Virus record (IMG/VR): IMGVR_UViG_3300017917_001342 | Span: 372,001 to 436,000 of that record | Direction: 5' to 3' (one strand) | Length of the DNA: 64,000 nucleotides | In this document: positions 42,445-44,933 of the stretch, in pieces | How positions within the stretch are numbered: position 1 is the first letter of the stretch | Layout of the letters: the number at the start of each line of letters is the position of its first letter | Translations under genes and position numbers: made by a program | Notes under the pieces: generated by a model | The model's database searches: none | Told to the model about the DNA's origin: nothing | Seen by the model: the letters and a program-made list of their open reading frames with translations, nothing else

Positions 42445-43299
42445 ATGTCAGCTAATCCACTTCAACGGTATTTTCGCAGACCTGCATTATGGGTAAAATT
42501 ACCAACACTAGGCAAATGGTACCAAAACAATGAAGTGCGTTACAATGAAAATTTCGAAGTACAGGTCTATGGCATAACTGCAATAGACGAAATCTTAATC
42601 AATACACCCGACGCACTGTTTAATGGGCATGCATTAGAAAGCGTTATTAGAAGTTGTATACCAGAAGTATATGACATTAAGAGTCTATTACAGCCAGACT
42701 TAGAAGCACTGTTTTTAGGAATCAAATCTGCATCAAGTAACGGAAAATATGAAATCACTAGGACTTGCAAAAAATGTACACATGAAAATACATTTGATTT
42801 AAATTGCAATCATCTTTTAGATAGCATGAGATATCTAGAAGATTCAGATGCTGTAGTCAATGTAGGTAATGATATTAAGGTGCATGTAAAACCTTACGAT
42901 TTCGACATGCGCAGTTTATTCATTAAACGACAACTAGAAGAAAGAAAAACTCTTTCATTAATAGAAAATGACACAGAGATAGACGATAATTTATTGAAAG
43001 CTAGCAAATATGCAAAAAGCTTAGAAGAAATGACTAAATTGACATTTAGGTTGATGTCCGAGTCTATTGTTGCAGTAGAAATTCTAGGCAGAGATGCACA
43101 ATACGTCACTGACAAAGACCATATATCAGAATGGATGTTAAATGTTAATAAGCAAACTGCTAGTTCAATCATAGAGGCAGTTAATGCATTGAACGCATTA
43201 GGTCCCCAAAGGTCCACTACTGCTGTGTGTCAAAATTGCAGTCACACCTGGGAAGAAAGCCTTAATTTTGATCCAACTGTTTTTTTTACGCAACGATAA
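42445..43299 (+). CDS. gp26: Baseplate hub assembly / tail chaperone protein (T4 gp26-like)
   Basis: NPLQRYFRRP...KLPT.G.WY, DLEALF..IKSAS.G, CxxC pairs, ends FDPTVFF. Confidence 0.7.
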   Translation: MSANPLQRYFRRPALWVKLPTLGKWYQNNEVRYNENFEVQVYGITAIDEILINTPDALFNGHALESVIRSCIPEVYDIKSLLQPDLEALFLGIKSASSNGKYEITRTCKKCTHENTFDLNCNHLLDSMRYLEDSDAVVNVGNDIKVHVKPYDFDMRSLFIKRQLEERKTLSLIENDTEIDDNLLKASKYAKSLEEMTKLTFRLMSESIVAVEILGRDAQYVTDKDHISEWMLNVNKQTASSIIEAVNALNALGPQRSTTAVCQNCSHTWEESLNFDPTVFFTQR

Positions 43300-43517
43300 C
43301 AGACTCTGATGTAGAAAAAATAGATAACATGTTAAGACTGTTATCTAGCAATAGAGATGTTATCGAAAATGACATTAACACATTGGTTTATTACATGAAT
43401 GGCGGATTGGATTATAATGATGCCTGGTTACTGACATCTGATCAACGCAAGAACATGTATAATGTCATTCAGAAACACTTCAATGCGATTAATCCTAAAA
43501 ACAAGTCTATGTTATAA
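43287..43517 (+). CDS. -1 frame extension of the gp26-like gene (contains track ORF 43329..43517)
   Basis: Open from the T-run at 43281-43287 through to ATG 43329. No SD before that ATG. YYMNGGLDYNDAWLLT motif. Confidence 0.6.
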   Translation, partial: YATITDSDVEKIDNMLRLLSSNRDVIENDINTLVYYMNGGLDYNDAWLLTSDQRKNMYNVIQKHFNAINPKNKSML

Positions 43518-43529
43518 TTCTATGTTTTG

Positions 43530-43575
43530 TGATGAGCTAAAGCTCATCAGTTATTTGATCTAAAGATCAAATAAC
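43530..43575. repeat. Two abutting perfect palindromes with identical CT-AA-AG centres
   Basis: TGATGAGCT-AA-AGCTCATCA (43530-43549) and GTTATTTGATCT-AA-AGATCAAATAAC (43550-43575). Confidence 0.9.
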
Positions 43576-43612
43576 ATTTTTAATAATTAAAAACTATCAA
43601 TTTATTAAGTAT

Positions 43613-43970
43613 TTCTGGTCGAGTTTGGGATCATATCACTCCCTTACCCAGGGAGTAATAAGATTGTCTTTCTGGTTCGAATGACGACCTGCCCTTTCAT
43701 CCTTGTTCTGCGTGAACAGCTGGCGGAGTACCTAATTCCAGCTTACAGATGTGATCCTCTGAGGAGTCTATACCTCAATACTCGGTTATGGGAGTTTACC
43801 CAAGCTACAGTAAGGTCAAACGGCCAGACCATTACTGCACTACAGAAAGCCAGTCAGACGGCTACTGTAGTCCTTTTTCTGATTTACTTGGCCAGGGCTT
43901 TGCAGTAGAATCCCTGTCAGTGAGTGTGATAACCTTGCCGTTATCCTTTCACTGGATGGAAAACACCATC
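43613..43970 (-). ncRNA. Putative large structured non-coding RNA (family unassigned)
   Basis: At least 9 consecutive stem-loops in a visibly GC-richer intergenic stretch. Several plus-strand A.C mismatches read as G.U on the minus strand. Confidence 0.55.
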
Positions 43971-44038
43971 ATTATGAAGCCAATATACGCGAAAGTTTTA
44001 GTTAATGGGAAATAAAGCAGTGAATACTAAGTGAGATA

Positions 44039-44386
44039 TTAAATTGAGCCTAGTGTTTTTTGAATCTCTTGATCTATAACTTCTGAGAGTTTTGTGCGTT
44101 CTAAAGTAATCATTGCTATGCCTACAACTGACCACAACGCTTGACGTTGTTCGTCAGTTAATTTCTTATACTTATTATCGAGTATCTTATGAAATTCTTC
44201 TTTCATATTATAGCATGGCCCAGCTATAGTACCGTAGTTTACCATTACTGGTTTGCGTTGCCATGGACTTTTTTTAGCTGCTGGTGCTGCTGCGGGTTTA
44301 GCATCAGCGGGGAACCAGTGTTTATCAGCTGATTCAGTAACTGCGTCTTTAGTTGCCTTTGTAGTCTTTTTAATTGCCATTCTCAT
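44039..44386 (-). CDS. Hypothetical protein
   Basis: K/A-rich N-terminus. Last gene of the recombination operon. Start may be ATG 44380. Confidence 0.5.
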   Translation of the reverse strand: MRMAIKKTTKATKDAVTESADKHWFPADAKPAAAPAAKKSPWQRKPVMVNYGTIAGPCYNMKEEFHKILDNKYKKLTDEQRQALWSVVGIAMITLERTKLSEVIDQEIQKTLGSI

Positions 44387-44933
44387 TCTCTGTTACTGTT
44401 ATAGCATTGCTTGCTGTGGTGGTATCTGTCAAATTAGATTTGTTAAAAAAGTGATTTTCTGGTTGAGCCAAGTAATCGTCAAAACTGTGAATGTAGTATT
44501 CTTTGTATCTATTATGAAATTTACCTGTTATAGGCGACTTTAAAAATGTCATAATATCAACGTTGTTGTATTTTACAACAAGCACCATTGCTTTGCCGCT
44601 TGCTGCTGCATCTTGTTCTGCCTGTGAAAGCCAAGTGTCCCATTGTTGAACGCTGTGATTAAGCCAACTCTGTACACTTGGTGCTTTTTTGTAATGTTTA
44701 CACTCGATACTGTAAGTAAAGTCTCTTGGACAAATTAAATCTCCAAAAATTGCATAGTCTAAACTGTAGTTTTCAGTTCTAGTTTTATTGCTGCCTCCGA
44801 AGAAGCTACCACTATCTGGATTGCGTCTAAAACCATTTTTAACACCTAGATGCGATTCAAATCTTGCACTTAATATGTTTGCAATTTTTCTTTCAAATGA
44901 ATTGCCTTTTGCTTTACCATTTACAGCCATCAC
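44370..44933 (-). CDS. Holliday junction resolvase-like PD-(D/E)xK nuclease
   Basis: NGKAKGNSFER, GDLICP, SIECKHY. Confidence 0.75.
   Translation of the reverse strand: MMAVNGKAKGNSFERKIANILSARFESHLGVKNGFRRNPDSGSFFGGSNKTRTENYSLDYAIFGDLICPRDFTYSIECKHYKKAPSVQSWLNHSVQQWDTWLSQAEQDAAASGKAMVLVVKYNNVDIMTFLKSPITGKFHNRYKEYYIHSFDDYLAQPENHFFNKSNLTDTTTASNAITVTENENGN

Follow-up and report, generated by a model that had tools for sequence, protein, structure and literature searches.

The sequence examined here is a 64,000-nucleotide stretch (the window) from the 518-kb T4-like phage record IMGVR_UViG_3300017917_001342, positions 372,001 to 436,000. Within it, a roughly 375-base intergenic stretch separates a baseplate-hub gene and a 62-aa ORF on the one side from a gp47-gp46-resolvase block on the other. 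The plus strand of this stretch has the same direction as the upstream baseplate-hub operon and converges on the gp46/47-resolvase block, and no same-strand gene lies downstream. The neighbours (the baseplate hub, the 62-aa ORF, a 115-aa ORF and a nuclease) gave no clue to function. The region from 43600 to 44000 has 44-48% G+C compared with about 30-36% in the flanks. When folded and compared with dinucleotide shuffles, it gave z = -4.74 on the plus strand and z = -3.38 on the minus strand, with 0 of 100 shuffles folding as well.

A sequence-only reading of this DNA had proposed a multi-domain structured RNA of about 360 nt at 43613-43970, with nine consecutive stems, a possible long-range GGTCG/CGACC pairing, a G+C content above that of its flanks and spurious ORFs. 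That observation was confirmed, as each of the nine local hairpins corresponds to a helix which is conserved across a family of homologues with compensatory changes (Table 1). Three corrections were required. The element is larger, extending from about 43606 to 43986 as judged from the extent of homologue matches; the GGTCG/CGACC pairing is not conserved in relatives; and helices Pb, Pc and Pi together with three pseudoknots had been missed.

Table 1. Positions of the predicted RNA element and its parts within the window, with supporting evidence and the stem intervals originally proposed from the sequence alone.
Position	Strand	Feature	Evidence	Stem as first proposed
43606..43986	+	Whole conserved RNA element (about 375-380 nt)	Extent of nhmmer and covariance-model matches in all homologues; conservation stops after the invariant UAU at 43984-43986	
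43612..43622	+	S1, first copy of a conserved ~11-nt element (UUUCUGGUCGA here; UUCUGAUAGA in most lineages)	Conserved in sequence; changes in parallel with S2 across lineages; no pairing partner supported; may pair with the 3' tail in some lineages	
43638..43656	+	Pa hairpin (ACUCCCU / AGGGAGU, loop UACCC)	10 modelled pairs, 7 with compensatory changes	43636-43658
43666..43685	+	S2, second copy of the element (43669-43681), flanked by a short stem Ps (GUC 43666-68 / GAC 43683-85)	Parallel variation with S1; Ps weakly supported by partner permutation (z = -2.5, 188/20000)	
43689..43693	+	PK2, 5' strand (CUGCC); pairs with the loop of Pg	Relatives show 5-9 bp with compensated sequences, e.g. CAUGCCGUG/CACGGCAUG, AUACUGUG/CACAGUAU, UAGACAU/AUGUCUA, GCCUGUCU/AGACAGGC; permutation z = -6.8, 0/20000; weak (3-5 bp with a bulge) in the window's own lineage	
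43822..43827	+	PK2, 3' strand (GGCCAG, in the loop of Pg)	As for PK2, 5' strand	
43698..43701	+	Pb 5' strand (CAUC); closes a three-way junction holding Pc and Pd	Pairs with GAUG 43748-43751; 3 of 4 pairs compensatory on both unfitted and fitted alignments	
43748..43751	+	Pb 3' strand (GAUG)	As for Pb 5' strand	
43704..43718	+	Pc, variable hairpin (UGUUC / GAACA)	All 5 pairs show compensatory changes	
43719..43742	+	Pd hairpin (GCUGG / CCAGC) with a nearly invariant 14-nt loop CGG-AGUA-CCUAAUU	Stem 98.6% paired; the loop motif found most family members in IMG/VR	43718-43743
43726..43730	+	PK1, 5' strand (GAGUA, inside the Pd loop)	Pairs with UACUC 43779-43783; 140/140 cells Watson-Crick and 36 compensated cells on a plain MAFFT alignment not fitted to structure; permutation z = -8.8, 0/20000; kept with other sequences in a distant subfamily	
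43779..43783	+	PK1, 3' strand (UACUC)	As for PK1, 5' strand	
43760..43777	+	Pe hairpin (UGAGG / CCUCA)	All 5 pairs compensatory	43761-43776
43784..43806	+	Pf hairpin (GGU..UGGG / CCCA..GCU) carrying the invariant CGGUUAUGG	93-97% paired, with conserved G-U pairs that alternate with G-C or A-U	43781-43804
43808..43837	+	Pg long hairpin; its loop forms PK2	All 9 pairs show compensatory changes	43808-43837
43839..43871	+	Ph long hairpin with semi-conserved loop (GUCAGAC / GUCACAC)	10 of 11 pairs compensatory	43839-43871
43874..43881	+	PK3, 5' strand (UUUU-U-CUG, after the invariant UCCUUU)	Pairs with the 5' part of the Pj loop (CAG-U-AGAA, 43903-43910); relatives show UCCGU/ACGGA, GUUCAA/UUGAAC, GCUCU/AGAGC, GUCAU/AUGAC, CCUG/CAGG, GCGA/UCGC; permutation z = -5.4, 0/20000	
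43903..43910	+	PK3, 3' strand (in the Pj loop)	As for PK3, 5' strand	
43888..43892	+	Pi 5' strand (UUGGC); closes the 3' four-way junction	Pairs with GCCAA 43979-43983; all 5 pairs compensatory, 96.7% paired	
43979..43983	+	Pi 3' strand (GCCAA), followed by the invariant UAU (43984-43986)	As for Pi 5' strand	
43893..43916	+	Pj hairpin (CAGGG / CCCUG)	3 of 4 modelled pairs compensatory	43893-43916
43918..43954	+	Pk long hairpin (CAGUGAG..GAUAAC / GUUAUC..UUCACUG), with a U.U mismatch, a bulged U and strongly conserved sequence	11 of 12 pairs compensatory	43918-43954 (nested GATAAC/GTTATC)
43955..43970	+	Pl hairpin (GAUGG / CCAUC)	100% paired, all 4 modelled pairs compensatory	43955-43970
43531..43575	+	Two conserved hairpins between the 62-aa ORF and the RNA: GAUGAGC-N4-GCUCAUC (43531-48), then a second hairpin plus U-tract (43550-75); either a terminator or processing site of the upstream operon, or a 5' extension of the RNA	Terminator-like by scan; the first hairpin is unique in the window and conserved in most members, with one compensatory change	

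To determine whether the fold is under selection, homologues were collected and aligned. About 30 distinct homologues were found in related uncultured jumbo T4-like phages, on contigs from freshwater and wetland samples, all lying between the gp46-resolvase block and the small ORF plus baseplate-hub gene, on the strand opposite to gp46. One phage lineage carries a second, divergent copy elsewhere in the genome, and the paralogous copy sits in an unrelated context next to NAD-salvage genes, while no paralogue was found inside the window. Three domain-sized covariance models were used to measure pairing. The 3' domain was 92.7% paired with 23 of 25 pairs compensatory, the middle domain 90.4% paired with 28 of 32 pairs compensatory, and the 5' and central domain 86.8% paired with 17 of 24 pairs compensatory, giving 68 of 81 modelled pairs with compensatory changes overall. 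In each domain 0 of 500 shuffles reached the observed values and slid controls were only 29-56% paired. Three of the four pair counts were made on alignments fitted to the model, which lean towards the structure, and the shuffle and permutation controls ignore relatedness; the fourth, which includes PK1, was made on an alignment not fitted to structure.

The feature which defines the family is the Pd hairpin with loop CGG-NNNN-CCU.., whose G and following four nucleotides pair with a downstream pentamer followed by GG (PK1), at the gp46/baseplate-hub locus on the strand opposite to gp46. It is present in the window (43719-43742 and 43779-43785), in 28 of 28 aligned members, and in 7 further distinct sequences (10 loci) of a second, more distant subfamily at the same locus, which keeps PK1 as GUCAU/AUGAC, GUUGA/UCAAC, GUCAG/CUGAC and GUCGU/ACGAC, with 0 hits for the scrambled control. 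Other long-range pairings were examined and rejected. The minimum-free-energy long-range helix of the window (43615-24 with 43886-95), like the GGTCG/CGACC pairing, was rejected because covariation instead supports Pi. An S1:S2 duplex, local S1 or S2 hairpins, and pairing of the Ph loop with Pk received no support from partner permutation, and S1 with the 3' tail as a closing helix showed long complementarity in some lineages but was not significant overall.

With respect to the duplicated element, the parallel variation of S1 and S2 is unexplained by pairing. In most lineages S2 reads CUGAUGA and S1 reads CUGA, and aligned antiparallel these would give tandem G.A pairs, then U.U, then C-G, as in a box C/D kink-turn. 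However, in the window and its close relatives the boxes are replaced by CUGGU in both copies, and there was no covariation support for S1:S2 pairing, so that the kink-turn criterion of RUGAUGA and CUGA boxes forming tandem sheared G.A pairs next to a 3-nt bulge was not satisfied. A hammerhead reading of CUGAUGAG in S2 was also rejected, because there is no GAAA or cleavage-site element and the motif is absent from the window's lineage.

The window was next compared with known RNA families. None of the 4227 Rfam 15 models (including GOLLD, ROOL, OLE, HEARO, raiA, RNase P, tmRNA, group I/II introns and riboswitches) matched at gathering score over the whole window. A search of 43450-44100 at E <= 10 with lax filters returned only six chance-level hits (14-21 bits) to eukaryotic or archaeal snoRNA, miRNA and similar models, all far below their gathering scores of 40-113 bits. 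ARAGORN detected neither a tRNA nor a tmRNA. DNA similarity searches of 50,697 phage records, using the window RNA and two distant homologues as queries, gave no match. A scan of one genome per species for 185,579 bacterial and archaeal species with the Pd motif gave 36 hits, all inside ORFs of 138-873 codons and mostly in G+C-rich genomes; none extended beyond the motif or lay in a known RNA, and they were rejected as chance matches. In the closest cultured phages, PA5oct and Phosso (gp46 about 47% identical), covariance models and nhmmer found nothing significant and neither region has an Rfam family, although both genomes have an ORF-free, strongly folding gap at the syntenic place, 76517-77179 in PA5oct and 229759-230772 in Phosso. 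The four published PA5oct ncRNAs lie elsewhere (PMC7318152). No prior description was found in the literature library searched.

Taken together, the analysis shows that the region encodes a new family of non-coding, highly structured RNA of about 375 nt on the plus strand, inherited vertically at a fixed locus in a large clade of uncultured jumbo T4-like phages. It folds into a 5' part, in which hairpin Pa is flanked by the two copies of the 11-nt element, a central three-way junction (Pb/Pc/Pd) followed by four hairpins (Pe-Ph), and a 3' four-way junction (Pi/Pj/Pk/Pl). These are tied together by three pseudoknots, joining the Pd loop to the strand before Pf, the strand before Pb to the Pg loop, and the strand before Pi to the Pj loop. 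What remains inference, drawn from sequence and architecture without expression data or an identified partner protein, is that the RNA is made as its own transcript, after the terminator-like hairpins of the upstream operon and from a -10-like TAnAAT box seen 11-12 nt upstream in many relatives, and that it acts in trans as a compact folded RNA, either a scaffold or cofactor for a phage or host partner, or a catalyst. The promoter is only a weak consensus and no canonical terminator follows the RNA. In this view the invariant unpaired motifs (CGG..CCUAAUU, CGGUUAUGG, UCCUUU, the Pk internal loop and the duplicated UUCUGRU.NGA) would form the functional surface. The absence of a same-strand gene downstream and the terminator-like hairpins upstream favour a stand-alone RNA rather than a leader. 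We consider a stand-alone, trans-acting folded RNA the most likely reading, with a probability of roughly 0.6.

The interpretation offered by the sequence-only reading was therefore partly supported: a novel phage ncRNA class is upheld, its minus-strand inference is not supported, and its alternative of an R-loop origin transcript is not favoured.

As an origin or primer RNA, the transcript would prime or license DNA replication like the R-loop transcripts of T4 ori(uvsY)/ori(34), or like ColE1 RNA II, a folded RNA of several hundred nucleotides whose structure decides hybrid formation. In favour of this, the element lies next to recombination and replication genes (gp46/47 and the RusA/PDDEXK nuclease) and is richer in G+C than its flanks, and T4 ori(uvsY) also lies near the baseplate genes 25/26. 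The second copy in one lineage would be expected if a genome has several origins, and in Phosso an RNase HI gene borders the syntenic gap. However, selection acts on three intramolecular or RNA-RNA pseudoknots and two multi-helix junctions, which are not needed for, and compete with, a persistent RNA-DNA hybrid. No DNA unwinding element, MotA-type promoter or other origin feature was recognised, and no sigma-70-type promoter lies directly upstream. G-U pairs are tolerated but A.C pairs are not, so the constraint is on RNA rather than duplex DNA. On this indirect evidence the reading is unlikely but not excluded.

Equally unlikely is a 3'-UTR or processing element of the baseplate operon, in which the fold would stabilise, terminate or process the upstream late mRNA and have no function of its own. 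The RNA has the same strand as, and lies directly downstream of, the baseplate-hub gene and the 62-aa ORF, two conserved hairpins link them, and no clear independent promoter was found. Against this, a 375-nt, three-pseudoknot fold with many invariant unpaired nucleotides is far more than stabilisers or terminators need, the terminator-like hairpin plus U-tract lies upstream of the RNA and not inside it, and the context of the paralogous copy is unrelated.

A highly divergent member of a known large RNA class is very doubtful. The size and several pseudoknots recall tmRNA, genes for which are known in large phages, and S1 and S2 in the window's lineage resemble the E. coli tmRNA 5' segment AUUCUGGAUUCGAC, but this resemblance disappears in other lineages. 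The 3' strand GCCAA pairs about 90 nt upstream (Pi) and not with the 5' end, so there is no acceptor stem; the Pl loop has 5-6 nt and is not the 7-nt T-loop of a T-arm, there is no tRNA-like domain or CCA, the invariant 3' motif being UAU, and no tag reading frame is conserved in any of six frames. For bacterial RNase P RNA, there was no Rfam hit at E <= 10, and by inspection the invariant motifs of the family do not include the CR-I or CR-V consensus from which the P4 pseudoknot is built. For group I and group II introns there was no Rfam hit, and the RNA lies between convergent genes, after a stop codon and terminator-like hairpins, rather than inside a gene, and is inherited vertically at one locus, unlike introns.

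A minus-strand RNA is similarly improbable. It had been inferred from a few C.A mismatches in the single window sequence, and the minus strand also folds better than shuffles, as any reverse complement of a structured RNA does. On the unfitted MAFFT alignment, however, several pairs alternate between G-U and G-C or A-U on the plus strand (GU:15/GC:10; UG:20/UA:7), and on the minus strand these would be A.C mismatches in most sequences. Family-wide, conserved G-U positions lie on the plus strand, a further one being GU:21. Over the fitted alignments G-U cells outnumber A.C cells 107 to 41, and the plus strand has the stronger z-score. Finally, a protein-coding gene (perhaps with an alternative genetic code) or a chance G+C-rich spacer is the least likely reading. 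Although two 75-codon ORFs overlap the region in the window, no frame is conserved, indels are not in multiples of three, several homologues have no stop-free stretch longer than 65 codons in any frame, and substitutions in stems are compensatory.

Among known systems, GOLLD and ROOL are also large, elaborately folded, pseudoknotted, stand-alone RNAs of undetermined function, often phage- or prophage-borne and found by comparative analysis of metagenomes, and cryo-EM work on those RNAs shows that such folds can be RNA-only assemblies (bioRxiv 10.1101/2024.12.08.627333). The present RNA does not match their Rfam models, is smaller (~375 nt, against roughly 580-800 nt), and sits at a fixed syntenic locus among core T4-like genes of jumbo phages related to PA5oct rather than near tRNA clusters. 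By analogy only, phi29 pRNA, the structural RNA of a packaging motor, resembles the present RNA, with its inferred action in trans, in being a phage-encoded, trans-acting, folded RNA that uses loop-loop pairings and lies among virion genes, but there is no homology and T4-type packaging motors are not known to use RNA. A more speculative and less likely possibility is that the RNA is the core of a new phage machine, either a ribozyme or a self-assembling RNA or RNP particle in the manner of the ROOL/GOLLD cages or the phi29 pRNA ring, in which some of the pseudoknots are really intermolecular contacts and the duplicated UUCUGRU.NGA element would bind two copies of a partner. Either way it would be needed for a late step of infection in a whole clade of 100-570-kb T4-like phages.

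Large RNAs with junctions locked by several pseudoknots are rare, and the known ones are nearly all ribozymes, riboswitches or RNP cores (RNase P, tmRNA, introns, GOLLD/ROOL/OLE). The family described here provides RNA biologists with a well-defined new target of about 375 nt, with roughly 30 diverse sequences, a testable secondary structure and three testable pseudoknots, and provides phage biologists with a marker and an open question for the PA5oct-related jumbo phage group. As the RNA is kept at a single locus, among core virion and recombination genes, across a deep and widespread clade of uncultured jumbo phages, it probably performs a conserved step of the infection cycle that current protein-centred annotation misses.

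Over the two proteins tested, the window is identical (99-100%) to the 518,643-bp contig IMGVR_UViG_3300017917_001342. Around the element it carries on its plus strand a baseplate-hub gene and a 62-aa ORF, and on its minus strand a 115-aa ORF, a RusA/PDDEXK-like nuclease, and gp46- and gp47-like SbcCD genes; a portal gene lies upstream. The element therefore sits between convergent gene blocks. The nuclease gene, which follows gp46, is named a RusA-like resolvase by PHROGs, while its counterparts in relatives hit Pfam PDDEXK_15, so that the naming is inconsistent between libraries. The closest cultured phages, as judged by gp46 at about 47% identity, are the Pseudomonas jumbo phage PA5oct group and Sinorhizobium phage Phosso. 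Positions of the features are collected in the table that follows.

Positions of features in the window and in related loci (L numbers denote individual loci of relatives; S1 and S2, two copies of one ~11-nt element; PK1, first pseudoknot)
Feature	Position	Strand
Baseplate-hub gene	window 42445-43299	+
62-aa ORF	window 43329-43517	+
Two conserved hairpins between the 62-aa ORF and the RNA	window 43531-43575 (individually 43530-49 and 43550-75)	
S1	window 43612-22	+
S2	window 43669-81	+
PK1, GAGUA in the loop of hairpin Pd	window 43726-30	+
PK1, UACUC	window 43779-83	+
Invariant UAU, end of conservation	window 43984-86	+
GGGRANAUUU and (R)UGAGCCUR motif region downstream of the RNA	window 44004-44012 and 44045-44052	
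115-aa ORF, nuclease, gp46- and gp47-like genes	window 44039 onward	-
RusA-like/PDDEXK nuclease gene	window 44370-44933	-
Divergent paralogue of the RNA	L176:1858-2261	-
Gene with AmoC hit	L287:2500-3132	
Homing-endonuclease-type insertions	L283:6282-7340; L283:911-1819; L287:3570-4310 and L287:1-1212	
ORF-free syntenic gap, PA5oct	L289:10868-11530 (NC_071039.1 76517-77179)	
ORF-free syntenic gap, Phosso	L288:10411-11424 (PV764938.1 229759-230772)	

The sequence-only reading had described a GC-rich stretch of consecutive stems without full RNase P, tmRNA, group I or tRNA signatures, and this observation was confirmed. The stretch has 44-48% G+C, against about 30-36% in its flanks, and folds much better than dinucleotide shuffles, with z = -4.74 on the plus strand and -3.38 on the minus strand. 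No Rfam 15 family matched at its gathering score anywhere in the window, and at E <= 10 only chance-level hits appeared in the region. No tRNA or tmRNA was found, no similar DNA was present in 50,697 phage records, and there was no second copy in the window. No reading frame is conserved, and several members of the family have no stop-free stretch longer than 65 codons in any frame across the ~375-nt element.

To collect homologues, a protein search was carried out with gp46, which showed a rich clade of relatives, 63-96% identical, on contigs of up to 512 kb. Loci around gp46 were obtained from metagenomes and IMG/VR, IMG/VR was scanned with the most conserved RNA motif, and DNA was recovered for eight of ten further gp46 variants. 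Together these gave 32 distinct RNA sequences by nhmmer, at E values from 1e-121 to 1e-16. The arrangement is always the same: gp47, gp46, nuclease, zero to two small ORFs, the RNA on the opposite strand, a 58-73-aa ORF, then the baseplate-hub gene. One phage lineage carries two copies of the RNA, the syntenic one and a divergent paralogue elsewhere (locus L176, with L231 on the same 309,756-bp contig IMGVR_UViG_3300042473_001540), which lies next to NadR-like (cytidylyltransferase + NUDIX) and phosphoribosyltransferase genes. Several relatives have homing-endonuclease-type insertions around gp46/gp47: a SegE-like GIY-YIG gene in locus L283, faint NUMOD3-hit genes in L283 and in locus L287, and a weak intein-splicing hit with a faint LAGLIDADG hit in L287. 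In L283 the SegE-like gene occupies the place where the PDDEXK nuclease gene lies in the other relatives, and no such nuclease was called there. In L287 a gene with a hit to AmoC (ammonia monooxygenase subunit C, PF04896) lies about 1.4 kb upstream of gp46; this would be an auxiliary metabolic gene, and it hints at an ammonia-oxidising host.

A scan of one genome for each of 185,579 bacterial and archaeal species with the motif of Pd, a hairpin with a nearly invariant loop, returned 36 hits. All lie inside ORFs of 138-873 codons, mostly in G+C-rich genomes, none extends beyond the motif and none lies in a known RNA, so that no cellular homologue was seen. The Pd-loop motif also occurs inside a 1291-codon ORF of another group of large phages (IMG/VR loci L180, L195, L200 and L227, including a 573,298-bp contig), where it has no other feature of the RNA and was taken as a chance match within coding sequence.

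RNAalifold applied to a plain MAFFT alignment already gave 41 pairs, 26 of them with compensatory changes, and a search for runs of complementary, covarying columns then revealed long-range pairs. Three domain models, rather than one model of the full RNA, were built and all members were realigned to them; the pair counts are presented in the table that follows. In each domain, 0 of 500 shuffles reached the observed values for percentage paired, compensated pairs, compensated cells or covariation score, although the count of further pair types did not stand out. Sliding the partner strand by 1-3 columns dropped pairing to 29-56%. These three alignments are fitted to the models and so lean towards the structure. 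As a check, a plain MAFFT alignment of the region from helix Pb to helix Pf gave 95.4% pairing and 62 compensated cells, against 15 in shuffles.

Base pairing and compensatory change in the three domain alignments
Domain	Helices	Cells paired	Pairs with compensatory change	Compensated cells (shuffle mean)
3' domain	Pi, Pj, Pk, Pl	92.7%	23 of 25	113 (30)
Middle domain	Pe, Pf, Pg, Ph	90.4%	28 of 32	222 (66)
5' and central domain	Pa, Pb, Pc, Pd	86.8%	17 of 24	116 (37)

Three pseudoknots were identified. In PK1, five nucleotides of the Pd loop (GAGUA) pair with UACUC just before the invariant GGUUAUGG, and on the unfitted alignment all 140 cells are Watson-Crick, the variants being GAGUG/CACUC, GAAUG/CAUUC, GAGCG/CGCUC, GAACG/CGUUC, GAGAA/UUCUC, GGGUA/UACCC and GGGCA/UGCCC. 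In PK2, the strand between S2 and Pb pairs with the loop of Pg, as in CAUGCCGUG/CACGGCAUG, AUACUGUG/CACAGUAU, UAGACAU/AUGUCUA and GCCUGUCU/AGACAGGC, read from the alignment, while in the window's own lineage it is only CUG-CC with GG-C-CAG. In PK3, the variable hexamer after the invariant UCCUUU pairs with the 5' part of the Pj loop, as in UCCGU/ACGGA, GUUCAA/UUGAAC, GCUCU/AGAGC, GUCAU/AUGAC, CCUG/CAGG and GCGA/UCGC. Each sequence's own duplex energy was compared with the energy after partners were permuted among 23 lineage representatives, which gave z = -8.8, -6.8 and -5.4 for PK1, PK2 and PK3 respectively, with 0 of 20,000 permutations as low. The test ignores relatedness, but the representatives are distinct lineages.

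With respect to strand, the RNA is on the plus strand. On the unfitted alignment, Pf has G-U in 15 sequences against G-C in 10 at one pair and U-G in 20 against U-A in 7 at another, and Pb has U-G in 4 against C-G in 23. Pk has a G-U pair in 21 of 30 sequences. All of these would be A.C mismatches on the minus strand. Overall, 107 G-U cells stand against 41 A.C cells. The interpretation offered by the sequence-only reading was thus supported only in part, since its inference of a minus-strand RNA, which rested on a few mismatches in one sequence, is not supported.

The ends of the RNA and its expression could only be inferred. Two terminator-like hairpins follow the 62-aa ORF, the second being followed by a U-tract. 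The first, GAUGAGC-N4-GCUCAUC, is unique in the 64-kb window and is conserved in most members, with an A-U to G-C compensatory change in two of them; it may be a processing or termination signal, or a 5' extension of the RNA. Many members have a TAnAAT-like hexamer 11-12 nt upstream of AUUCUG, of which the window has only a weak version, and no sigma-70-type promoter was found directly upstream. Conservation ends at the invariant UAU, and no conserved terminator follows. Downstream of the RNA many members carry GGGRANAUUU followed by one or several copies of (R)UGAGCCUR, which in some looks like a ribosome-binding site plus a start codon of a tiny ORF (for example MSLIEYFD in locus L016) and in others is repeated without a frame; in the window the motif overlaps the last codons of the convergent 115-aa ORF. 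In some lineages S1 is complementary to the tail just after UAUG (11 bp in locus L233, 8 bp in locus L230), which hints at a closing helix, but the test of this pairing has no power because S1 is conserved. S1 and S2 change in parallel across lineages, a feature for which we have no explanation: no pairing partner was found, neither pairing between them nor local hairpins was supported, and only a short stem around S2 had weak support. In most lineages they read like box D (CUGA) and box C (CUGAUGA), but not in the window's lineage.

To determine how far the family extends, more distant loci were also examined. The 5' and central model found weaker matches, at E from 1e-5 to 0.08, in 25 further loci whose gp46 is only about 50% identical, and 21 of them lie on the strand opposite to gp46, about 1 kb beyond it. 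Four further weak motif-only hits had already been shown to lie inside long ORFs. In one of these loci, L035, S1-like, Pa, S2-like and Pd-like elements can be read, together with PK1 of wholly different sequence, GUCAU/AUGAC. A pattern search over all non-member loci found 10 loci (7 distinct sequences) with the Pd-type loop and the exact complementary pentamer plus GG downstream, the variants being GUCAU, GUUGA, GUCAG and GUCGU. All lie on the expected strand, and a scrambled control gave 0. The middle and 3' models did not detect these distant versions, which form a second, divergent subfamily. Among cultured relatives, PA5oct and Phosso have the same gene order, with an unannotated, ORF-free gap of 0.66-1.0 kb at the syntenic place, bordered in Phosso by an RNase HI gene. 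While these gaps fold much better than mononucleotide shuffles, with z as low as -8, they show no detectable homology to the family and hold no Rfam family. The four ncRNAs reported for PA5oct lie elsewhere in its genome (PMC7318152).

No prior description of this RNA was found in the literature library searched. An R-loop or primer role, a 3'-UTR role and divergent membership of a known class were each weighed as alternatives, and none fits the pattern of conservation as well, although the function proposed here remains an inference. These data establish a vertically inherited, plus-strand, non-coding RNA with about 90 covariation-supported base pairs, two multi-helix junctions and three pseudoknots, unrelated to any described family. 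Beyond this, we infer that it is a stand-alone, trans-acting folded RNA that scaffolds a partner or catalyses a reaction, because no gene lies downstream on its strand, many invariant nucleotides are unpaired, and a paralogue, in this view, works from an unrelated locus.
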